Below, piece after piece: positions 23,230-53,274 of a stretch of DNA of 64,000 bases (its first letter is position 1; each line of letters begins with the position of its first letter). The stretch is from Selaginella moellendorffii (lineage: Eukaryota; Plantae; Lycopodiophyta). The notes below the pieces were generated by a model, which saw only the letters and a program-made list of their open reading frames with translations, did not search any database and was not told the origin of the DNA. Both the position numbers and the translations under genes were made by a program. The stretch lies in assembly GCF_000143415.4 (NCBI RefSeq), contig NW_003314269.1:1158623-1222622 (forward strand). Direction: 5' to 3'.

Positions 23230-24270
23230 AGATAGCAACGACTAGACGTTCAACCTGGATGTAGATTAAGAATTCCCAACCAGCGGAGCTGACAAGTCTG
23301 CTTCTTAGTTTCTGTGATATGACCAGCTATGGCCCATCCTATATTCTCGATTACTCTGGTCCAGATCGTGGCACCACCAAGTACTTTCAGTATGAGTTCC
23401 ATGAGCAGGACTCCAAAGCTATAGATTGTTAAAAAAGCTTGTATTGTGATAAGAAAAAAACTGAGGTTCATAGGTGTTTCAACCTAATGCAATGAGAGAG
23501 TTCCTTTTGAAATTTGATTTAGAGCCTCTAATTGTCTTTTCCCAAAGTGTTCTAAGAGAAAGTTTTCCTTTGTAAAAGATGTTAAAAAGCTTGTACTATG
23601 ATATGATAAAAACAGATGTTCACAAGAGTTTTGATTTTATGCAATGAGAGAGTTCCACTGGAAATTTGATTGAGAGCATCCAATCCAAAGTGTTCTAGAG
23701 AAAATTGCCTTTGTAAAAGATTCAAATTGAAGCTTTGTTCTTTTTGTCTTGAGAATGTATGTCATGACATGGGAAGTCTGGTAGAAAATTTTTTCGATGA
23801 CCTGGTATTCAGTGGGATCTTGATAGATACACTTTGTCACAAGATCTTCAAAGCATTTTGATGAGGGTGCTTCAGCTTCTCAGTTGCAACAGGTTGAGAG
23901 ATTAACCGGCTGTGGTTCACAGGAGTTTTGATTTTATTAGATTGCCAATTTTTACTCCAATCCATTATCCTGCAAGAATGTCTTCACCTGGACCATCCTC
24001 ATCATTGCTCACACCCACAACAGCCTCTTCTTAACCCCATTTATGTGTCTGACGTGTGAGCAAACATTGATGCTTTCTTTTAGATGACATAGATATTGTA
24101 TGATAAAGGTTAGTGATATGAACATTCAGGTAGGCAATAAAATCAAAACTCTTGTGAACCTTAGTTTTCTTTTTATCACAGTACAAGCTTTTTTAACAAG
24201 AGGCATCTATAGTTTTGGAGTCCTACTCATGGAACTCATACTCAAAGTATTTGGTGGTGCCACGATCACA
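23230..24270. repeat. Scrambled repeats containing a protein-kinase subdomain IX fragment in inverted orientation
   Basis: IYSFGVLLMELI is encoded on the minus strand near 23390-23430 and on the plus strand near 24205-24245. There is also a ~150-bp tandem duplication at 23428-23720. Confidence 0.6.
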
Positions 24271-24629
24271 GCATGATAATGATAAAGTAGAAAAGGTTAG
24301 CGAAGAAAATAAACAATGCTCATGATGCTGGTAGAGGATCAACTCCATCACTTATTTGAACTTTAGCAGCTAGTAAGGGATTTTAAACCTTTTGGGTTCA
24401 AGGGATAGAGGGGTTCATAGGAGTTTGATTTTATGAATGTTTGTATCGATAGCCTTTATCAATGTTAGCCTTTATCCATCAAAGTTTATTTTAATTTTTA
24501 ATCTAATGATAATATGATGCTATGCTATTGGAAATTTAATTTTTTTTGGAAAAAAAACATAAAAGGAAAACATTAAAGAGGTTAGAACAATATAGATACT
24601 TGTGGCCAATTTCACAAATGAAACTTCCT

Positions 24630-27600
24630 TAAAGTAGCTTTTAAAGAATGTATTAGTCAAATAAGCCCTTGGACAGGCCAAGATAAAATGAGTCAATGTG
24701 GAGTTTGATAGTATATTGCAAGCATGCAAGTGAGGAATGGCAACAACTCAAACTCATGCTTACTAGCAATAATCTCTGAAAAAGGTGGTAGAATATAAGT
24801 AGGATCTGAAATAAATGTAATATGGTTCTAATAAAGAAACATGAAACACCAAATAAAAGCCCATGGTAGAGAAAGATTAAGCTAATAAGTCATCTCAAAG
24901 GTTGTCTTAAATGTGATTATAAGTATTAAAAGTTACATATCAATTAATTCTTTTAGATATTCTATTATTGTCACATTGTTGGTATTGCTAGTTCCTTATG
25001 TTAGTCCTTTTTGTTTTTTGTTGAACTGTTACGAAACTAAGTTTAAGTAGAATAGGAATTGAAAGAATAGAAAGTGTCAAATATATTTAGTCTTGTTAGT
25101 TCTCTTTTGCTTTTTCATGTATTGGCTTGGCAAAAAGCTTTGTATATGGAGTATTAATCCCTTAAAATTGTTATATGATAACTTACTATATTTTCTATCT
25201 GTAACTTTGATCTTAAAGCACCTTTAAATTGATATTTATTCATTTATTTGTGATTGTAATTTGAGGAAAAGCTTTAAGGATAATTTTTTTTATCACTACA
25301 TTATTTATTTTATTAGTTTTGTTAGGAGTTTGTCATTGAGAGAAGAAAGGACGACTAAAGCAATGAAGAAAAAAGGATAGGATTTATAATTAACACTTTG
25401 AGTACACTGAAATCCCTAAGTTTATAGGGGCTTTTAATTTTATTCAAGCTAATAAAGAAACCTATTAATCTCAAATTGTATTAGACACTTAAGGTTTGAT
25501 TCTTACTGTGGCTAGTAATGGTGAATATACTCTTAATAAATATAAAGAAATGATAAATATATAACATTATGGCCCCCCTTTTTTATATAGAAATTTGCAA
25601 CCATCTTAGAAGTATGAACAAGATAATAAACAAATGCTCAACTATTATCTCTATGAGAATATCCAAGCCAATTAACCAAATAATAAAGTTTGTGATACTA
25701 GTACTTTGAGTCAAGAATGACAACAACCTCAAACTCATGCTTGCCAATAATAATATCTAGAGAAGGTGCTAAAGACTAGAGAGAGATGTATTGAAAAATG
25801 CTAAAAATTATTATAAATAAACTTAGTATAAGTAAGGAGAAGATATTGCTCAAGAGTTTGAATAGTATGCTTTGTTTACTTATCAGTCTAAGGATGGTAA
25901 AAAATAAATGATTTACTTTTGACATAGATAAAGGAAAGAAATTTGTCCTAAAAGGTCAAAACAAATTAATGCCTTTAATCATTAATAATATTATCTAACA
26001 ATACATGAAAGCTTAAAATCTTCTTATCAACAAATTTAGTTAAATTTTCTCTATCTTGACATGGTAACAAATGTGTCATTTTAGAAAATTGATGGACTAT
26101 AACAAAAACATTATTAACAAAGACACTTGAGATTGGTAATAAATCTATAAAATTAAATTTCTAATGCAATTAAGTAAGAGGAGTTGAAAAAGACCATATG
26201 GAAGATGTCAAGGCATCTTAATTTATCGATAATTATCACAAATATATACAAATTTTTATTTATATATATGCATATAGGGGCCACCAAAATTCTTGTTGAA
26301 TTAGTTTAAGTGCTATGCTGTTAGAGTGTTATAGCATACTTAAATCACACACAATTTCATTATGCAATCAGATAAATATAATTGAGTATATTAATAAAGG
26401 TCTATCCCAAAATAAAAAAACTTGATAATCACTATGTTAGGCTGAAGAAACACTAAGAAAAAAACTTGCCAAGATTCATAAGCAAATGAATTAGTAGTTT
26501 AAATTACTTAAATTTATAATTTAAGGGAGTGATCAAGAGGAACAAAATATTATGTAAGGGAATTGATTTTAAATTAACAGGATTTAATGAAAGTTTGGTG
26601 TTAAAAGTCAAATACAAAGTTTGAAGATGAGGGTGTAATATAACTATATCGAGTAAAAGTATCAACTTTTCTATTTACTTTTTCTAGGTGATGTATAATT
26701 ATAAATTAAAAATAGGATAATGATTGCGATTATCGAGTTTGATACTAAGGACACATACCAAGGCAATATTAAAGGTTTTTGCAATTATTATATATAGTAG
26801 TCATGTGCAGAAATGATACCAAGCTTCAAAAGGGTTTATAATTGCAATTAATTGTTTTGTTGAAGATATTATAATTGAATTGTGTAATTATACACTTTTG
26901 AAAGTGGAAACAATAAGGTGAATTTTGCTATTATGTCCCTTTGTGACAATACAATGCCCAAAATAGAATCTAAAATATTTATCTCAACAAAATATAATTT
27001 CATATTGTTTAGATGGATAAGAACTAAAATGGAAGGAAATGTAAGCTTTATAAGATAGTAAAACGTTTGGCCAATAAAAAGCCATATAAAAAAAGCATTT
27101 TTTATAGTGAGTCTCCTCATCAAATGAAAATGAATTTAGAAAAGTTTTGAATGAAGTGTTAATAAAAGTTTGCAAAACTAAGAAAATATTAAATATCATG
27201 AATAAAGTTTAGGTGTTGTTACTCAAGAATTCTTGGAAGGATCCATAATGATGACATAAAAAGAAATAATGTAATTTAAAATCTTTATTGAATCTTGATT
27301 AAAATATAAAAAAATGATCTTAGTGGAATATTAATATGAAAAGGCTTGGAAATTTAAAGTTAAGATGTGAAAACAATGAATCATCCTTAATTAAATTTAA
27401 TATTTTTTATTTTTCAAAATATAGATGTTGCCTCCACTATACAACCCTAAGGGCAAATGCAAAAACAAAAACATTGCTCCAAGAAGTGGTTTGCATCACT
27501 ATAAATTGTTCTCAATTTAACATTGTCATTCGGCATTGAAAAGACATTATTGATATATGGCTCCAATCTCCATTAAAAATATACTTTATTCATATGCTAG

Positions 27601-27950
27601 TTACTGTAAGATTTAAGTCATTAGACAAAGGAATAAAGATTTATTTATGATGTTCCAATTGACATTATTGCAATTAATTGTTACAATGAACAATAAGATT
27701 AATAATAGTTGTGAGAGATGTTAAATCTACATAAAAAAGCATAAGATCTTTGACATTTTTACAAAAGTAAAGATGGAAATATTTTTAAAGAGTTGCATTA
27801 TCCCATGAAAAATTAGTGGCAAACATCTAGAAGTCTAATATATAGATGGATGTAAATTTGAGCCTTGGTGTAAAAGAGTGGTCCTATTTGCAAATGATTT
27901 TAAAATAGTTTGTTCATAATTGCCACAAATGTTGCAAGAGCATTAGTGAG
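24630..27950 (-). mobile_element. Heavily decayed chromovirus (Ty3/gypsy) remnants
   Basis: Minus strand 25745-25635 reads GKHEFEVVVILDSKY*YHKLYYLVNWLGYSHRDNS* (chromodomain), followed by a polypurine tract (25571-25585) and TGTTAT. RNase H remnant near 26930-27000; second chromodomain relic near 24660-24790. Very AT-rich. Confidence 0.7.
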
Positions 27951-27959
27951 TCCAAAGGG

Positions 27960-28975
27960 CATGACTAAATGAATGATACACTCATCTACACTAAAACTGA
28001 AGAAGAACACGTCCACTTGCTATATAATGTGCTTGATCTGCTCAAGAAAAATGAGTTTTATTTAAATCTAAATAAAAGTTTCTTCTTTCAAGATCATAGT
28101 ATCTTGGGCCCTCTAGAGGGATCACAATGGATGTTCATAAGGTTGAGGCCATGAGGACGTGGTTAACTCCTCACAATCCACATGACAGTTACTCATTTTT
28201 GGGCTTTATAAGGTTTGGTTCTAGGGTTGTTAGGGATTTTTTTGTGATGTAATTTGCTTCTTTTAAGTGGAATGAAATAGAAGCTTCTATAGTGATGACA
28301 AATGCAAGTGATGCTAGAATTGGTGTTGTGCTCATGCAAGACAATCATATAATCACTTTTGAAAGCCACAAAAATTCAAGTGCTAATTCTCATTACTCAG
28401 TTTATGATAAAGAATTTCTTACCATGATTTATACTTTGCAAAAGTGGAAACACTTTCTCATAGGGGTGGATCTTGAAATGCATACCAATCATAATGCACT
28501 ACAACATTACCTCTCTCAGCCAGTTATGAATAAGTAATAGGCTCACTGGGTGGCCTTCTTTGCTAATTTTTGTTTTAAGACCATTTTTATTCTTAGCAAT
28601 AAGAATTTAGTGGCTGATGTGCTAAGTCAGAGGGCACATACACACACACATTAATGCTATTTTGGTGGTTTTCATTAATTTTGCAGTGTCTTTTCCATAT
28701 AAGTATATGACTGATTATTATTTTAAGCTTATATATGAGAGTTTAAAACATGAGTAATGTTCAGAGACTAAAATCTCTTTGTAAGACTTATTCTCTTTCT
28801 GAGTATTTGCTTTATTTCCATGATTGTCTTTGTGTTCTTTTGTGTAAGGATACTTGGACTAAAAACAGGATATGTGACATTTCTTTATTGGTTCAGAAAG
28901 AATATTCAAAGTATAAAATTGGATATTCTCCTAGTGAAAACGCATATTCCCCATGTTACTCCAGATGAAAACTCA
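27960..28975 (+). mobile_element. Decayed Ty3/gypsy RT/RNase H fragment
   Basis: DTLIYTKTEEEHVHLL, TNASDARIGVVLMQD, YSVYDKEFL, KWKHFL. Confidence 0.85.
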
Positions 28976-31976: not shown

Positions 31977-32023
31977 TGTATTTTCAACAAATGCGAAATT
32001 ACTCGGCCGCCATCACCGTGCTC

Positions 32024-32403
32024 GGAATCGAAGAAGCCTTTTGCCTCGTCCAAGACCCCATTGCTCGCATAGGCGCCAAGCATCACTCGCGCGACCTTCA
32101 TGGCATACCCGTGGATCATGACGCTTCAAGTGATGGTCTTATTGAACATATGCTGGCACGAGGGTTGTAGCGGGCATGGAATAAAAAATTTGTTTAGCCA
32201 TCCCGGCCTTGGTATATACGCATAGCATAGCTTCCCACATCACTGCTGCTGGCTTTGTTAAAGAGATCAAAGCATGGGTTAAGGTCCTTGCAGCCCTATA
32301 TGCTTTGATCATCACTGTCCATGAGATGTCATTGCAATGTGGCAATCCATCAGAGACTTGTTGGGCTTGATCTGTCTCGCGGCTCTCTGCATAAGATTTG
32401 AGC
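32024..32403 (-). pseudogene. PPR-A fragment, copy 3
   Basis: Reverse complement of the 13070-13470 type sequence. Confidence 0.85.
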
Positions 32404-32994
32404 AAAAGTGGAAACACTTTCTCATAGGGGTGAATCTTGAAATGCATACCAACTACAACATTACCTCACTCAGCCAGTTATGAATAAGTAATAGGCTCAC
32501 TGGTTGGCCTTCTTTGCTAATTTTTGTTTTAAGACCATTTATATTCTTAGCAATAAGAATTTAGTGGCTGATGTGCTAAGTCAAAGGGCACATACACACA
32601 CACATTAATGGTATTTTGGTGGTTTTCATTAATTTTGCAGTGTCTTTTCCATATAAGTATATGACTGATTATTCTTTTAAGCTTATTTATGAGAGTTTTA
32701 AGCATGAGTAATGTTCAGAGACTAAAATCTCTTTGTATAAGACTTATTCTCTTTCTGAGTATTTGCTTTATTTCCATGATTGTCTTTGTGTTCTCTTGTG
32801 TAAGGATACTTGGACTATGCTTTTACTATGGCATGTTATTCGTAAACCAGTGTTGCATGATAAAAGACTATACTATGTGAAAAACAGGATATGTGACATT
32901 TCTTTATTGGTTCAGAAAGAATATTCTAAGTGTAAAATTGGATATTCTCCTAGTGAAAACGCATATTCCCCATGTTACTCCAGATGAAAACTCA
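32402..32994 (+). repeat. Direct repeat of the retroelement fragment at 28438-28975
   Basis: Near-identical from gcaaaagtggaaacac to cagatgaaaactca, differing by small indels. Confidence 0.9.
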
Positions 32995-35425
32995 TTAAAT
33001 ATTCCCTATAAATACTTGAAAAATATTCCCCAGAATCTAATGCATTATGGGGTGTTCATGGCCATGTAAATGACCTCTTACACAGCCATCCAATGCAATC
33101 ATAGCATACCTAACATTCTTTCTTTGTGACTTAGATTTGGATTTCTTGAATTTTTTTGACCATGATCAAGAAAAGCTCAGAGTTTCTCAAATTCATGAAC
33201 TTACATACTATTTGTCATGACTTTCACATTTCAGAAGCTGATTTTTTTCACAAATATTAGAAAACAAAAGTTTACTACATAGGAAGAGGATTACATTGCA
33301 AGTAACTTTCTAGTTAATCATCTAGTAGTTCTTCCAGATCTTGCATTGGCTCCTAGTCTTGACTTCAATGAGGAAGATCATCTTCACCATGGCATCAGGA
33401 AATTATTGGAGTTTTGTTTAAGGCTTATGTCTAAGAGTGTTCCATGTACGACTGTCCATGTATTGCGAATGGAATAGAAGCCTTAGAGTGTCTCCAAATT
33501 TAGTAGACAAATGCTGTTGGGAAGGAGCTCGAAATGCTCTCCTCTCAAGTTCCTGTATAATTTTCTCAAAGATCTTTTGCTTCACTTGCATTGCTGGCTA
33601 TGGCGGCCAATTCCAATCCCTCCTCTCTTTCCAGTGATTACCAAAACGGTGGCATGAATTCCAGCTTACAGTTGATCAGAAACACAATCAAAATGTGTCA
33701 TGGATTCTCAACCAGGCTGATCACCTGGTGCTCATGATCGACAAGGCTGAGCACGAGCCTTGGAGATTTGTGGGTAAGGTTGACAGGTTAGGCAATCTAG
33801 ACATAGAGCAGCAGCTATGGATCAACTACAGATTCATGCAAATGCAATTGATCTTTGGAGTAGAGGGCGAAAGCAATGAACAACTAGAAAATGCTGCTTA
33901 TGGGTAACTGCTGGAGTGCAGAAGATCTGTCCCCCTGGAACCATTTGGCTGCTTTTTCTGAAGGATCACCACCAGCAAGAAAACGGTTTCTACTCCCATC
34001 ATCACAGTGATGTGTTCGTGAGCCGATCTAAATAAGAATTGAGAGCCACATTGACCATGGTGGAGCCGTGGGTGAAGTGGAGGTTGTTGATTCTCGCTGC
34101 TCGCTCATCAATATGGCTGGAAATGAAGGCATGCTTCTTCGTGCATGTTCACACTACCACACTCAATCTAATTGTAAGAGGAGAATTTTCTATTGATTTC
34201 GAAATCTTTATCTCGGTAGGGAAGATGAAGCTATGGAAGTAGGAGACTAGAGTGCTGGCCGTGTGAATGCTCTGCTGGAGTAATAGCTGTTGTTGAAGGT
34301 GTCTGGATGGGGTTGAGGGATGCCACATCCAGTGACCAAGATCCATATCCCCTCCACATTGCAGTTCTATAGCAAAGAGATATTAAGTACAAATTTACGT
34401 GGTCCAATTACATATTGCCACGTGGAAGATAAATATTGTTTGGATAGACAAATAACACACCATATTTAACACTTATCTATCAAAGTAGATTTCTATAACT
34501 CAATCGTGGATAGTTATAGATTTTTTGACATTCACCTTACATATTGTAAGTAGTTTCTTATCATATTTGTTTAAAAAAGAAATATGGAATAAAATATAAA
34601 CCAAAGGAAGGACCAGATGCCAATGATATGAGAATGGTCATGCATAGATTCAAGTGAACTCATTATTAAATCTATATAAAAATAATTGATATTATTTACT
34701 AAAAGATAGGATGAAGAAAATGTTAATTTTTTTATCATTTGTATTAAGCTGGAAAAATATAAAAATATTTAAAAAGAAAAAGTAAAATCTAAAACTAAAT
34801 ACATCACTCTTATTAATTTAGCTAATATTTAAAGTAAATGTACTTATAATAGAATAGTACTTATTTATAATATACATATGAATATTAATTTGATATTTAA
34901 ATAAAAGGATTATATAATAAGTGAAAAATATTATACTAAGTGAATTTGACTTAAGAAAAACAATAAAATGCATTGCAGTAATTATGACATCATATGATAA
35001 GGTAATAGAAGAGAACATAGCCACACTTCTAAAAGAAATGATTGAGTTTAATGTTAAGTTGAATTTTTGAAAAAATTATAATTTTATTTTATACTAGAAA
35101 ATATCATTCAAAACATAATATCTCATTTTGAAATTACTTAATAGTTAATTCATAAAGCCTTAGCTATTTTGTATAAAAATGTTTTTTCACATTCTTTTAA
35201 AAGAATAAAATTATAGCTAACAAATTTTTACAATATATAAGTGTTTAAGATCCACTCAAATGCATAATTACATTTAAAAAATAACCTTATGACATTTTGA
35301 AATTATTTTATTTTATCTTAGATGAAATATTCATTGTTGTGTTTGTATCGCTACTGTGTGGTATTAGTTTCTCAAAATAATCCAAGTAATTTCTCTTTTG
35401 TAAAAGCAATAATTCATTTTTGATT

Positions 35426-36107
35426 CCATGATCACATGCGCTACACTCACCCCCCCCTTCAGAGATGTCAATGTCCTCATTGATTATTGACTAGCAACCC
35501 CTACTAAGCCAAGAGGAACTAGCATCTTCATTTCCGCACTCAATCTACCAATCCTTCCATTGTGTAAATTAGCTATTCCATGTGAGGTAACTAGTTATCC
35601 ACCCGTACCACAGTCCCACAGTGAATACCTTCATCTGTGGATACTCCACACAAGAGGAAGGATGTACGCATGGATGTCCAATACGTACAATTTCAAATTT
35701 TAGGGGTAGGAATATACCTTACTCAAGGGTCACTGTGCCACAGTGGATACCTTCATCTGTGGATATTCCACAAGAGGAAGGATGTACGCATGGATGTCCA
35801 ATACATACGATTTCAAAATGTCCAATACGTACGATTTCAAATTTTAGGGGTAGGAATATACCTTGCTCAAGGGTATATTATATTTTTTTAAGTAGCCACT
35901 AATCAATGGAAATCAAACCTGTGCCATTTGCTTCGATACCAACTATAGCGCACCTTTTATCTCTCTCCCCTTAAACCAACTGGAAAAAGGGCAATTGCTT
36001 GATGAGAGAGCCCTTAGTGGCTATTTTATCCCCATTTATCCCCTAAGGTTCCAAGGATCCATGGTGATAGTATATCCAAATCTCATCCCATGATCACATG
36101 CGCTACA
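35426..36107 (-). mobile_element. Second TRIM-like non-autonomous LTR element (3' LTR truncated)
   Basis: 164-bp LTR 35944-36107 (TGTAGCGC...GCGCTATA on minus), PBS TGGTATCGAAGC (35930-35941), PPT GAAGGGGGGGGTGAG (35446-35460), then the first 20 bp of the LTR again (35426-35445). Internal ~120-bp tandem duplication. Confidence 0.8.
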
Positions 36108-39510: not shown

Positions 39511-39582
39511 GGGCATTTGGTCTAGTGGTATGATTCTCGCTTTGGGTGTGAGAGGTCGCGAGTTCGATTCTCGCAATGCCCC
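39511..39582 (+). tRNA. tRNA-Pro(UGG)
   Basis: GGGCATT/AATGCCC acceptor stem, TGGTCTAGTGG A box, CTCGC-TT-TGG-GT-GTGAG anticodon arm, GCGAG-TTCGATT-CTCGC T arm. Confidence 0.93.
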
Positions 39583-39732
39583 CCCATTTAATTTGATTTA
39601 ATTCCATTTAATTTGACTTAATTCCATTTGTGGTACAATTTATTCAAATCATGTTCAGATTAGAAATGCGAAATTGATTATTCAATTTTACAGTCAGAAA
39701 GGAAACAAACGAAAGAAAACAAAGAATTACTG

Positions 39733-45057: not shown

Positions 45058-45752
45058 CTCCCTCCCTCCTGGAAAGAAACCAAGAACTCCGCTTTAGTCG
45101 AGACACACGAAATTTCTCAAGAACACCGGGCTCTAGAAACGCGCGGCGCCATAGAAACGCACAGATTTCGGAGAGCGCCATACCTGGATTGGAATGCCGG
45201 CGCGGTCGGCCGCGCTCCAGATCCAGGCCTCGCTCGCCTAGGGCATCCAGAAATCCCCGGGCGCGTATTTCACCTGTGATCCCTTCCCCGTCGCAGCTAC
45301 GAGAGATCCCGTCGAAGGAGTGGCAACGATGGCGATGGAAGAGAGACGACGCGCGCTACGGTGGAATCTCGCCCCACGGCCCAGCTAGAATAGCCAGGCT
45401 TTCGGCCACAGCGATATAGCTTATACCTCCTCTACACATTCACAGTTGTGCACAGTGTTTTTCCTGGCCCAATTCACAGTACGATGATGGTCACCCGTGG
45501 CCGTACATATGGCCACGCAAAGAATGAGCCCACAACGGAATCACGGCAGTAACAGTGGTAACTAAATCATACTTACCCCGCCATCATGGTAACTTGCATT
45601 ACATTTCAAGGATAGAAAGTAGCTGGGCAGGCATCGGACGGTCGAGATTCCACCAGTACGGACGGCCTGGATAAGACGAAAATAGAATATACCCTATTTT
45701 GACCCGTGCAGATTCTTTTGGAAGAACCCTAGGATTGATTGGAGCGAGCGCG

Positions 45753-46083
45753 ATGGCGGGCGTAGCGGCGGTGGCGAGAGCGGCGACCAGGACGATCGCG
45801 CAGTCCTCGCAGCTAGCTTGTAAGTGACTCGCATTCTCTCGCGATCGATTAGGGCTTTCTTTTTCTCCTCTTTCTTGTTCTTCCAGCGACGAGGAGCTTC
45901 CAGACGGGCGCGCCGAGGCAGTGCTACTACGATTACGAGCACCGGGAGCATATGTATGAGATCTGGAACATGAAGAACCGGAACCTCAAATTTGGGCTGC
46001 TGGTGTGGGGCGGGATCGTCGGGCTGGGGATCGCGATTCCGATCTATGTCGTCAGGTTCCAAATGAAGAAGGCGCAGGCTTAG
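45753..46083 (+). CDS. Small mitochondrial single-TM protein (87 aa), COX-X3/COX7c-like
   Basis: Exons 45753-45819 and 45887-46083 give MAGVAAVARAATRTIAQSSQLASTRSFQTGAPRQCYYDYEHREHMYEIWNMKNRNLKFGLLVWGGIVGLGIAIPIYVVRFQMKKAQA. Presequence-like N-terminus, HMY motif, TM ending IP..V.FQ..K. Confidence 0.8.
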
Positions 46084-46591
46084 ACGACGAAGACGAACTC
46101 CCGCGTCGAGCAGCAAGAAAACTCCTCTAGGTAGGAGTCTCTTCGTCTTTTTTCTTCTTTCATTGTTTCTCTTCTCTTTCTTTTTTCTGCTCATTGCTCT
46201 TCCTCCTCCCAGCTAAATGCATTGGTCAGGGCATGCAACGCCAGGCATCTTCCCCGTATAAAAAGACATCGTTTTTTAGCTCTTTGTCTAAAGGAATCTC
46301 TTCACGAATAAAAATGTTCCTTGAAAACTTTTAGGTTGAGCAAACACACACACAAAAGTGTGACGTGTCAGCCGATATGGCCTCCACGTCAAGAGAATCA
46401 CACGTCACCGGCCAGGCTAAACGCTTTTAACTAATCAAAGCACGAACTTTTCACAGATGTTAAGGCTAATTCAAGCGATTCACTATATAACAGTGAAACC
46501 GAATTTCCGGGTTCGAATCCTGGCACTCTCAACTCAAAAGTTTTTATTTTTTCACCTAACCGCAGGTTAAACATATATTATCTTCATGGTT

Positions 46592-46844
46592 TCACTTTGG
46601 TTTGGTTCGAGTGACCTGCGCGATGAGGCCCGAGAGCGCAGCGCAGTGCTTGGATCGATTCTCACACTCGTCGCAGCACTTCTGAAGATTGAGTATCACT
46701 TGTCGGCAGCTAGAAAGGCAAAATTGGAAACACGAGGCAAATAAGTGACCGATCCTCGTACCTTTCCATGACGTAGTGGTTTCTCTGGAGGCACGCTTGG
46801 ATGTCGCAAGCGTGCTGATTACACGGGTCTTTGCTCTTGGGCAT
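46592..46844 (-). CDS. CMC4: Twin-Cx9C protein, CMC4/MTCP1-like, copy b (66 aa)
   Basis: Exons 46844-46762 and 46709-46592 give MPKSKDPCNQHACDIQACLQRNHYVMESCRQVILNLQKCCDECENRSKHCAALSGLIAQVTRTKPK. Confidence 0.88.
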
Positions 46845-46951
46845 TTCTGGGAGAAAGAGGATCCAAGAACGAGGTGGCCTAGAAAGATAAATCGAGATCG
46901 CTACCTTACTTGCAGGAAAATAGAAGTAACCTACACAGAGGAGGACGATTT

Positions 46952-47248
46952 CTACTTGGCAACTTCGGCGGATTTTTGGGCCCTCTTCTTCTTGTCAAAG
47001 CTCGCGATCAGCCCCGACAGCGCTCCACAGTGCTTGGATTTATAATCGCAGTCCTCGCAGCACTGCTGGAGGTCCATGATCACGCCGCGGCATCTGCCAG
47101 AGATCAAATCTCCAGAGGAATTGGAGCTTGCGTTTGGGATTTGTTACCTTTGGATCACATAATCCTTCTTCTTGAGGCAATCCTGGATGTCGCACGCGTT
47201 CTGGTTGCAAGGACTGGCGCCAGCCGCGGGGACCCCAGTTCCTTGCAT
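46952..47248 (-). CDS. CMC4: Twin-Cx9C protein, CMC4/MTCP1-like, copy a (80 aa)
   Basis: Exons 47248-47148 and 47093-46952 give MQGTGVPAAGASPCNQNACDIQDCLKKKDYVIQRCRGVIMDLQQCCEDCDYKSKHCGALSGLIASFDKKKRAQKSAEVAK. Same intron position and phase as copy b. Confidence 0.88.
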
Positions 47249-47293
47249 TGGAGCCCAAGAACCCTAGAATATGGCTTCAAACGAATGGAATGT

Positions 47294-50200
47294 TTAGAAA
47301 AGTGGCAGGCTATTTGGGAAGCGAATGGCGAGCCAGTGCTTCTCGTACTCCACCCAGTGCTTCAATCCCATCTCTTCCAGGATCCGGATTCGCAGCTCAA
47401 ACAGTGGCTTCTGCGGCGGCTTGGAATCGTCTTGGATGAGCTCGTTGAGTGCCTGGAGAGAAATCGATCCAAAAGTCGTGAGAAAAAAAAAAAAAAAAAA
47501 CACGATCGAAATGAAGCTATGACATACCTTCAATGCGTTCCCGTAGCGTTTGAGCTTTCTCTCTCGCTTGACGTTGAAGAGCGCGTACTTGGACGATGTT
47601 ATGTCGACCCACTTTCGCAGCTCAGCGAATGTGGCCTCGTACTCGCTACTGTCTTCTTGTTTCTTGTCCTCTTCTTTCACGACCTCGCTCGAGCCTTCTC
47701 CGCTTTCGTCTTGTGGAGTTTCAATGCTCTCTTGCTTGGCCGATTCGAAGACGCCGGCCTTGTTTTGCTGTTCTTCTTTTTCTGCAATCGCAGTCAGCTT
47801 TTTACACAGCGCGTCCAGGAATGCGTCGCGCTGCATTTCCATGTCCTTTTTGGCTTGCTGCAAATGGAGTGCTTAGTCTCGGCCAAGTTTGTGCAACACT
47901 ACAAACGTACCACAGCATCAGCGTCTTCTGGTTCGTTCTTCATGGCAATAAACTTTGCGAGAGCGTCTTTCTCAATGCAACTGATGAGCTCGTCCGCAGC
48001 TGCGATCACCTGAAACGTCAAAAAGGCCTCGTCAGCCACAATGCTCATCGTGTTTTCGGATACCTCGTCGTAATCTTGCTCACTGTCCTTGGATGCTGCA
48101 AGCTTCTGCAAAATTTCGGACAGGAGCGGTATGTAGTTTGTAAACTCCGCCTGGCAGCATATCAGAAGGGCAAAATAAGCAAAACCAATTTCAGTTGAGA
48201 AAGGAATTACCTTTAAAGAATTTGCTTGACTAGACCATTCAGCGCGCTCTTCTTTTGTGGTTCTTGGGAGAAGCGATAGCAATTTGATCTTAACGTCTCT
48301 AACCTGCAGCGAGACGACAATGAAAAACACCGACAGCTTTGACATTGCAACTTACTTCCTCCTCAATTTTCTTGAAAGGAGACTTTTGTTGCTCTGGCTC
48401 CTTGTCTTTGGCCTTTTCATCATTCTAAAAGAACTCACAAATTACAACGGCAATAGAAAAAAAAATCATAATTACCTTGGCAGCGGGAGCAATCGGGACC
48501 ACAACCCGTGACACCGCAGGGCACGCCTGTCCATTTTCTTCACCTTTGTTGTTCGCGAATGAAGTCTTTCCCAACGTCATTTTTCCCATTAACAATGTTC
48601 CAATAGGCGCGTCCTGGAAAACTGCTGGTAAGAAAACTTTGTTTGCTGGAAAACTCCATTACCTTTGGAGCTTTATCGTCTCCAGGAGATGCAACATAAA
48701 AAGCACGTTTTTCTCTAACACAAATAACAAAAAGGATAAGTCAAGCAACGCTTTTCTTAGACATACCCGGGAGCCAGCACTGTAGGTTTGAGGCCGTTCG
48801 TACCAGTGATAGCACCATCGATATTTGAATAGGAGCTCAATTTTATGTAATTCTGCACAGAACACCGCCCGTGAGCTCATTTACAGTGAAAAATAAGCAC
48901 ACCTTTTCTTCAAGTCCACGATCAATGAATAATACTGCCTTCTTTAACTTCTCTAGGAAACTTGAATTGTCATGCCTACAAAAATATCGTTGAAGCTGAT
49001 TTTAAAAGGAAATATTTAGTACCTAATGAGCAAACGAATGGTGTATTCTCCCTTGGAAAGCTTCACGCCTTTGGGATAAACATCCCCCATTGAAAGTACT
49101 CTCTGCAAAATTCACACCATAAATGGGTAAAAGCAAAAAGCTGTGCCATACCTTGTTAGCATCATAAATCATATAAAACTGCGATTCAAATTCATTGTCA
49201 TAAACTCGACCATTCAAGGCGGGAAATCTTGGAGTATATTTACCCCCTTCTGAAAGGTTGACCTTATATCTGGACAAGCGTAAGTTATTAACAGACACAA
49301 TGACAGAGAACTCACATCAGTGTTAGACCATGTATTTGTCGTCCATCTGGTAAATTGTCTCGCTCTGCAGATAAGGCTTCTAACTTCCATTCGGAGGGCC
49401 GGTAAGGAGTTCGCACCTGTAACATCATTCAGAATTAACGTTGACTAAAATAAGATCCTTACCCTTGTTAAGGTTATTGAAGGAGTCAGTCTTTCACTAG
49501 AAAGAGGAGACATAACGTTGACTCGTGTCGCTACATCCGCTCCGTTTAAGAACAGATCACCGCTACAGCGAGTTAAGCCACGAAATTCAATCTGCACACA
49601 AATATAAGATGGGAACATTATAACATAACGTACAAAAATACCTCCACATCTACATGGGCGGCAGCATGACTACCACTGCCGCTAGACCAAAATTGCGATA
49701 TAGTCAACTCCATCGTTAGGCCCTCGCAAACAGAAAAGGCAAAACTTTTAGAGCAAGGTGCAGTTAGAGTAAGAATGCTTTCCCAAACGGATGGTCTCGC
49801 ACTCCTTTGAAGCTGGAAATTTTTTTTAAGTTACCACCAAGAAGTATAAAAAGACTAGTACCTGAACAGCGTTAAGGAAAAATTTCCTAGGTGTATCAAA
49901 ATTGGAAGTTCGGACAGTCATCTCGGCCCACGTAGCACCTTCGGGAACGGCTATGAATCTCCTCTCAACATGACCTTGATGAAAAAACATGAGTGCAATT
50001 CATAAAAATGAGGTTTCGAGCGAGGATTTACCAGGTGAGAATATCAATTTTAAGAAAGATACCGCTGGTGGCACTTCGGTTACTTGAACGGGCTTGACAA
50101 TTGTGACCGGGACACGAAACAATGGACCTCGCCACGGTGCCATACAATCTATGCCAACAACTTCAGCATAATGAACACCCGGCTTAAGATTTGTTGGGTC

Positions 50201-53200: not shown

Positions 53201-53274
53201 TGATCCGCCGGCGGCGATGGCGACCAACAGCGCGAGAGGACGAGCACTTGCGCACGGCACGAATAGAGATGCAT
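47294..53274 (-). CDS. TPP2: Tripeptidyl peptidase II (subtilisin-like), multi-exon
   Basis: [56 protein letters not shown] and C-terminal RFPNSLPLF. An alternative start at 53073 is possible. Confidence 0.95.

Follow-up and report, generated by a model that had tools for sequence, protein, structure and literature searches.

On the minus strand of a 64,000-nucleotide (nt) stretch of the Selaginella moellendorffii genome (contig NW_003314269.1, positions 1,158,623 to 1,222,622; hereafter the window, in whose own numbering positions are given), the gene TPP2 is followed by two small spliced paralogs of the CMC4 family, in the order TPP2, CMC4a, CMC4b and all co-oriented. That these three genes are transcribed as separate units without overlap can practically be excluded, because RNA is k-mer-continuous over both gene boundaries in four independent data sets. 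We favor a model, with a probability of about 0.6 for the model as a whole, in which the genes form a compact co-oriented cluster with one shared 3′ end and the two CMC4 copies share an intron-bridged dicistronic RNA. Taken separately, the existence of CMC4a-CMC4b dicistronic molecules appears likely.

RNA continuity across the two gene boundaries

An initial annotation of this DNA had called TPP2 and two spliced CMC4 paralogs, and these calls are borne out by the open reading frames (ORFs), Pfam matches and RNA joints, with all gene coordinates checked on the minus strand (Table 1). The two short distances to which it drew attention, 45 nt between the TPP2 stop (47294) and the CMC4a ATG (47248) and 107 nt between the CMC4a stop (46952) and the CMC4b ATG (46844), are correct. 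The window is the other haplotype of a locus on GenBank scaffold GL377565.1, with a full-length alignment interrupted by scattered single-nucleotide polymorphisms (SNPs) and small indels. That scaffold carries, on a single strand, HSP20, a 126-nt gap, a 1386-aa protein, an unannotated gap of 458 nt and a 66-aa CMC4. The identity of TPP2 comes from this allelic 1386-aa gene, which has Peptidase_S8 and TPPII domains (PF00082, PF21223, PF21316, PF12580) and whose 3′ exons align to the window; tripeptidyl peptidase II combines these domains in a single protein of about 1300-1400 aa. CMC4a, whose spliced model is 80 aa long, falls in the 458-nt gap, where GenBank has no gene call. CMC4b encodes 66 aa and is the same as the database protein P0001 (SELMODRAFT_74630) except for one allelic K/E change.

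Table 1 Coordinates of the TPP2-CMC4a-CMC4b locus and of neighboring features in the window
Feature	Position	Strand	Evidence
Penultimate TPP2 exon, coding	47527..47857	-	Joints 47857/47911 and 47451/47527 in 4/4 RNA contig sets
Last TPP2 intron, 75 nt, phase 0, with T21 tract	47452..47526	-	GT..AG, spliced in 4/4 runs
Last TPP2 exon, stop TAA 47296-47294	47294..47451	-	ORF listing; contigs unbroken into CMC4a exon 1
TPP2-CMC4a spacer, 45 nt	47249..47293	-	Inside TPP2 contig in X1, X2, X3, X5
CMC4a exon 1, 101 nt, 33 codons + 2 nt, ATG 47248	47148..47248	-	Pfam CMC4, E=1.7e-5
CMC4a intron, 54 nt, phase 2	47094..47147	-	Joint 47093/47148 in X1, X3, X5; retained form also in X3
CMC4a exon 2, stop TAG 46954-46952	46952..47093	-	Pfam CMC4
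CMC4a-CMC4b inter-ORF stretch, 107 nt	46845..46951	-	
Bridging intron, 58 nt, acceptor 2 nt 5′ of CMC4b ATG	46847..46904	-	Joint 46846/46905, GT..AG, X3 and X5
CMC4b exon 1, 83 nt, 27 codons + 2 nt, ATG 46844	46762..46844	-	Pfam CMC4, 31.1 bits; 100% identity to P0001 residues 1-27
CMC4b intron, 52 nt, phase 2	46710..46761	-	Spliced in 4/4 runs
CMC4b exon 2, stop TGA	46592..46709	-	Pfam CMC4; P0001 = SELMODRAFT_74630
Shared 3′ untranslated region (UTR) with AATAAA 46548-46543	46504..46591	-	Motif scan; RNA contig ends at 46548 or 46504
COX7C-like small spliced gene, convergent to CMC4b	45753-46083; exons 45753-45819, 45887-46128	+	Second exon Pfam COX7C, 26.4 bits (cut-off 25)
tRNA-Pro (TGG)	39511-39584	+	Sole Rfam gathering-level match in the window

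Logan contigs from four runs (X1, X2, X3 and X5), each from a different study, were compared with positions 45700-48700. The runs are catalogued merely as ‘RNA?’, yet their contigs lack introns and thus represent RNA. Such contigs are k-mer paths, and one contig over two genes does not show one transcript. In all four runs, the contig of spliced TPP2 continues through the stop codon, the 45-nt spacer and the CMC4a ATG into CMC4a exon 1, ending at 47166 in X1, X3 and X5 and at 47148 in X2. A single contig likewise links CMC4a exon 2 with CMC4b in each run and reaches 46548 or 46504. All introns of the locus are spliced in these contigs, and both CMC4 copies, on whose expression the initial annotation had made its whole proposal depend, are expressed and spliced. 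The breaks at 47166 and 47086 abut allelic SNPs at 47165 and 47087, which identifies them as heterozygosity bubbles rather than RNA ends, and no loose contig ends were reported in the four runs.

The contigs also define the intron that bridges the two CMC4 frames. An intron in the inter-ORF stretch had been proposed to run for 63 nt from a GT at 46909, leaving about 42 bp between the frames. The intron is real and its acceptor at 46847 was correctly placed; the donor was off by 5 nt, as the intron is 58 nt long from 46904 (donor AAG/GTAGCG), and the ORFs are 49 nt apart once it is spliced. The alternative GT at 46909 is GC in the other haplotype, and the true donor is conserved. The bridging intron is removed in X3 and X5 and retained in X1 and X2, and since the X1 and X2 contigs have the CMC4b intron spliced, they come from processed RNA rather than DNA. 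The depth of the bin 46811-46911 in X3 and X5 is what the exonic bases alone predict, so that no RNA ends within the bridging intron; a 3′ end belonging to CMC4a only must therefore lie within 47 nt of the CMC4a stop. No recognizable 3′-end signal is visible between the reading frames, these 47 nt included. CMC4a RNAs thus most likely continue into CMC4b, given the splicing of the bridging intron, the lack of any coverage end within it and the lack of a 3′-end signal in the 47 nt. The only AATAAA on the minus strand within 47560-46480 is at 46548, 44 nt past the CMC4b stop, where the contigs end. At this 3′ end of the CMC4 unit, Rfam gave just a chance-level snoRNA match.

Retention and splicing of the bridging intron divide the runs along with their 3′-UTR alleles. 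The two runs that retain it, X1 and X2, have the 3′ UTR of the window; the two that splice it, X3 and X5, have the GL377565-type 3′ UTR, with a 17-nt insertion after 46576 and a T>C change at 46603 that leads to K64E. This split may reflect allele-specific splicing or a difference between plant stocks. In GL377565, the bridging intron is 66 nt long owing to an 8-nt insertion. The last TPP2 intron is also length-polymorphic, with a 12-nt haplotype difference beside the T21 tract, within 47474-47510, and the T21 region is flagged as a repeat where reads appear cut.

The same data bear on a spliced TPP2-CMC4 fusion and on chimeras between the two CMC4 copies, both of which had been raised in the initial annotation. 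The frames would permit either. The ttctAG 15 nt before the CMC4a ATG is in frame with the phase-0 TPP2 donor at 47527, as had been noted, and the two CMC4 introns do share phase 2, so that CMC4a exon 1 could join CMC4b exon 2 in frame. However, the four RNA contig sets contain neither the joint from 47527 to about 47263 nor that from 47148 to 46709, and they do show every canonical joint; we consider a fusion or chimera very unlikely; contigs drop rare variants, and rare isoforms of this kind would escape them. The spacer itself is in the TPP2 frame, but the TAG of its ttctAG (47266-47264) is an in-frame stop, so that read-through of the TPP2 stop codon is not an option. Three SNPs distinguish the haplotypes within this spacer.

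The short spacers, and the AG that precedes each ATG by 2 nt or 15 nt, also give the locus the anatomy of nematode and tunicate operons, which would be resolved by spliced-leader (SL) trans-splicing at the AG acceptors upstream of each ATG. To our knowledge, SL trans-splicing is unknown in land plants. There are no leader-like loose ends at 47264 or 46847, the acceptor at 46847 is used in cis with the donor at 46904, and Rfam finds no SL RNA in the window. An SL operon thus has next to no probability here, the land-plant host and the lack of leader-like loose ends ruling it out.

Possible transcript starts and routes to the second reading frame

In the favored model, TPP2, CMC4a and CMC4b would constitute one compact RNA polymerase II cluster whose only poly(A) region follows CMC4b (AATAAA at 46548; contig ends at 46548-46504). 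CMC4a and CMC4b would lie on a common intron-bridged dicistronic mRNA, and TPP2 transcription would extend at least into CMC4a. The outcome would be a 3′-co-terminal set of RNAs with one terminator and with starts within the 3′ part of TPP2 and possibly also within CMC4a. At the TPP2-CMC4a boundary, two possibilities are roughly equally probable: read-through from TPP2, and CMC4a RNAs that begin in its last exon and overlap a short 3′ UTR of TPP2. The ratio of CMC4-contig to TPP2-contig depth, a coarse measure, ranges from 0.44 to 1.42 across runs; weak as the measure is, this variability hints at more than one RNA species.

The shorter 3′-co-terminal RNAs, on which CMC4a would be the first ORF, are the probable templates for the small proteins. 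CMC4b could then be reached by leaky scanning past a weak CMC4a start, by reinitiation after short ORFs, or on a shorter RNA that starts in CMC4a exon 2. Start contexts were scored against the general plant consensus rather than a Selaginella-specific one. By that standard the CMC4a start (ccaATGc), which lacks both a purine at -3 and a G at +4, appears weak, and the CMC4b start (gaaATGc) has a purine at -3. Three ATGs lie between the two starts: that at 47160 is directly followed by TGA, that at 47093 opens a 17-codon ORF, and that at 47077 is in frame and in good context. The 232 nt just before the CMC4b ATG are free of ATG, with none between 47076 and 46845.

Translation of the small ORFs from the full-length TPP2 mRNA is unlikely, because the first ORF has 1386 codons and three exon junctions follow the TPP2 stop. 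It is improbable that the main form is a true tricistronic mRNA, that is, one capped RNA from the TPP2 promoter whose three ORFs yield three proteins. The single AATAAA would suit such an RNA, as would the unbroken RNA paths that lead, in all four studies, from spliced TPP2 exons as far as the CMC4b end, and there are precedents in the polycistronic nuclear mRNAs of green algae (PMC7896298) and the polycistronic-like RNAs of Populus (10.1101/2025.07.17.665350). However, ribosomes would have to pass the many AUGs of the 1386-codon ORF, whereas algal polycistrons have short upstream ORFs. In addition, the depth ratio between TPP2 and CMC4 contigs is not constant, and the three spliced introns past the TPP2 stop predict nonsense-mediated decay (NMD).

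A more serious competitor, although one that we regard as rather unlikely, is a set of three independent monocistronic mRNAs that overlap. Their promoters would lie in the last exon or intron of the upstream gene, TPP2 and CMC4a would use cryptic poly(A) sites, and the assembly would merge the RNAs. Contigs cannot show single molecules, the depth ratio differs between runs, and the rule that eukaryotic ribosomes translate the 5′-most ORF favors separate starts. Candidate promoter elements can also be named. The TATAAA at 47044, within CMC4a exon 2 and about 200 nt before the CMC4b ATG, would turn the 58-nt intron into an ordinary 5′-UTR intron, and CMC4a might have a core promoter element of the plant Y-patch type in the T21/pyrimidine-rich tract of the last TPP2 intron. 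Against separate mRNAs, k-mer continuity demands an overlap of 31 nt or more between the units at each of the two junctions, and no contig break or loose end is found between the ORFs except at SNPs. The lack of coverage in the bridging intron in X3 and X5 further means that an mRNA of CMC4a only would need a 3′ UTR of at most 47 nt, in which no signal is visible. The initial annotation had offered di- or tricistronic RNAs and embedded promoters as alternatives; the contigs of the four studies uphold the idea of co-transcription or overlap but cannot tell these alternatives apart.

Several considerations weigh against our model of a shared, intron-bridged RNA. Its support comes from short-read contigs throughout, and overlapping independent transcripts would yield an identical contig picture. 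A TPP2 mRNA with three spliced introns after the stop codon is an expected NMD target. The three ATGs between the CMC4 starts depart from the AUG depletion seen in algae, which weakens the case for leaky scanning. Because poly(A) signals in plants are degenerate, a missing AATAAA leaves cryptic sites possible, and the TATAAA at 47044 could serve as an independent CMC4b promoter.

The CMC4 paralogs and their neighborhood

All four CMC4 exons match Pfam CMC4 (PF08991), each on the corresponding half of the profile, in agreement with the family that the initial annotation had proposed to verify by a profile search. The CMC4a exons were searched individually and matched profile positions 1-18 (E=1.7e-5) and 23-54 (E=0.0037); only P0001 served as a full-length query, for CMC4b, and it scored 57.6 bits against a cut-off of 28.9. 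P0001 also matched the structure of human CMC4 (PDB 1hp8) at 6e-10. The disulfides of human CMC4 are C7-C38, C17-C28 and C39-C50 (PMC12114033). Both Selaginella copies keep the six cysteines of these three disulfides (C8, C18, C29, C39, C40 and C50 in CMC4b; C14, C24, C35, C45, C46 and C56 in CMC4a) and share with the CMC4/p8-MTCP1 family (PDB 1HP8/2HP8) the CX9C-X10-CX9C helical hairpin with a third cysteine pair. In the 1hp8 alignment, the plant cysteines fall on the human ones, with a gap of one residue in the third and last pair, which is CX9C in the plant copies and CX10C in the human protein; the plant copies also have one extra cysteine. Members of the CMC4 family are MIA40/CHCHD4 substrates of unknown function (PMC12114033). 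By virtue of family membership, the Selaginella proteins would be imported into the mitochondrial intermembrane space in a MIA40-dependent manner.

An exhaustive search gave 92 relatives, the top ones of which look like plant CMC4 proteins. Its best-ranked entry, P0002 (2356 aa, 23 stretches), was rejected as a false positive, being a repetitive coiled-coil protein. Word searches were less productive: with CMC4a exon 2, no protein of 25-80 aa was returned, the self-hit included, and with the CMC4b ORF and with P0001, P0001 alone was recovered. Of 57 core residues, 34 are common to CMC4a and CMC4b; pS is at saturation (0.79), pN is 0.22 and the introns are unalignable, a pattern that points to an old duplication with both copies under constraint. 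CMC4a is the more divergent of the two, with 34-43% identity to P0003 and P0004 compared with 48-62% for CMC4b. An intron occupies the equivalent position in the L002 gene and in the unspliced predictions P0018, P0020 and P0023, from which we infer that the phase-2 CMC4 intron is ancestral. In P0005, a 99-aa plant CMC4 prediction, the second-exon segment CVRVIQLLQSCCEQCEYKSTHC is present twice in tandem. This is possibly a duplicated exon in an angiosperm gene, or else an artefact of its assembly or annotation.

Synteny, which had been put forward as a further check, did not extend to the single relative locus with DNA. At this P0004 locus (GCA_014871385.1; L002/L003), a DUF707 gene lies upstream of one CMC4 copy, compared with two in tandem in Selaginella, and neither TPP2 nor a second CMC4 was found within +/-8 kb. 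For P0003, on a 137-Mb contig, no neighbor was found within 8 kb, and the 930-nt transcript contig of P0006 gave no second plausible ORF.

Upstream of the cluster, the HSP20 stop (53402-53400, minus strand) lies 126 nt before the annotated TPP2 ATG at 53274 on the same strand, and the tight co-oriented chain may extend to HSP20-TPP2-CMC4a-CMC4b. On the other side, the COX7C-like gene has a 3′-UTR intron at 46129-46210 and RNA to about 46400; X1, X3 and X5, three of the four runs, show it expressed and spliced, and GenBank has no call for it at the allelic locus. Its 3′ end is about 100-150 nt from that of CMC4b, which makes three small mitochondrial genes adjacent. The plus-strand sequence CCGGGTTCGAATCCTGGCACTCTC at 46500-46531, opposite the CMC4 unit at its 3′ end, looks like the T-arm and acceptor 3′ half of a tRNA; neither ARAGORN nor Rfam calls a tRNA there, and it may be a tRNA-derived remnant. 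GC content falls to 0.28 at 24001-28000, with a second low of 0.36 at 32001-36000, compared with 0.42-0.52 over most of the window. With CMC4a and the COX7C, the Selaginella gene set gains two small mitochondrial genes that had escaped annotation, a warning that annotation pipelines overlook small genes packed behind large ones.

Comparison with multi-gene transcripts in other lineages

The nearest described parallels come from green algae and Populus. Nuclear polycistronic (bicistronic) mRNAs with short upstream ORFs are known from green algae (Gallaher et al. 2021, PMC7896298), and a study of leaky scanning in algal bicistrons describes AUG depletion and a weak first start (PMC11892635). The Selaginella locus shares with them small co-oriented ORFs close together on one spliced RNA path and very short inter-ORF distances (45 nt, and 107 nt or 49 nt after splicing). 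It also shares a short first ORF, here CMC4a, whose start appears weak by the general plant consensus, and small mitochondrial proteins as cargo; assembly-type ones (TOM22-like/SDHAF3, LYR proteins) are common in the algal loci. However, the algal criterion is full-length single molecules, whereas the Selaginella locus is known from contigs. Three AUGs between the starts, an inter-ORF intron and paralogous ORFs further set it apart, as does a unit that abuts, and is RNA-contiguous with, a 1386-codon gene in a lycophyte rather than a chlorophyte.

In Populus, polycistronic-like multi-gene RNAs were reported from Nanopore direct RNA sequencing, with organelle-associated genes over-represented and with mono- and multi-gene RNAs coexisting (preprint 10.1101/2025.07.17.665350). 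In both cases, RNA spans neighboring genes at a nuclear locus of a land plant, and the coexistence of mono- and multi-gene RNAs matches the model that we favor. The evidence in Populus consists of direct RNA reads and here of short-read contigs, and the Selaginella spacers of 45 and 107 nt are too small for ordinary UTRs or promoters.

With its paralogous ORFs of 66-80 aa, a single poly(A) site and a 58-nt bridging intron that is alternatively retained, the Selaginella pair could serve as a small, tractable test case for two questions: by what route the ribosomes of land plants arrive at a second ORF, and by what means RNAs of this type evade NMD. We found no literature on nuclear polycistrons in Selaginella.

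In humans, the MTCP1/CMC4 locus has a common promoter and a 5′ exon that is spliced to alternative sets of 3′ exons. CMC4 there, as in Selaginella, belongs to one transcription unit with a second, unrelated protein-coding gene; the Selaginella locus differs in its partner gene and in the absence of a TPP2-CMC4 exon joint.

One could imagine intron-bridged polycistronic mRNAs as a routine mode of expression for chains of nuclear genes in S. moellendorffii; the CMC4 pair would then share an mRNA from which both copies are translated and which might be carried along by TPP2 transcription. We hold this wider view to be doubtful; if true, polycistrony of the algal type would extend from the nuclear genomes of green algae into vascular plants. 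Nuclear polycistronic expression has so far been established rigorously in green algae and no more than suggested in a few seed plants, and single molecules carrying CMC4a and CMC4b, or all three ORFs, would provide a clean, RNA-supported case of nuclear polycistrony in a lycophyte.

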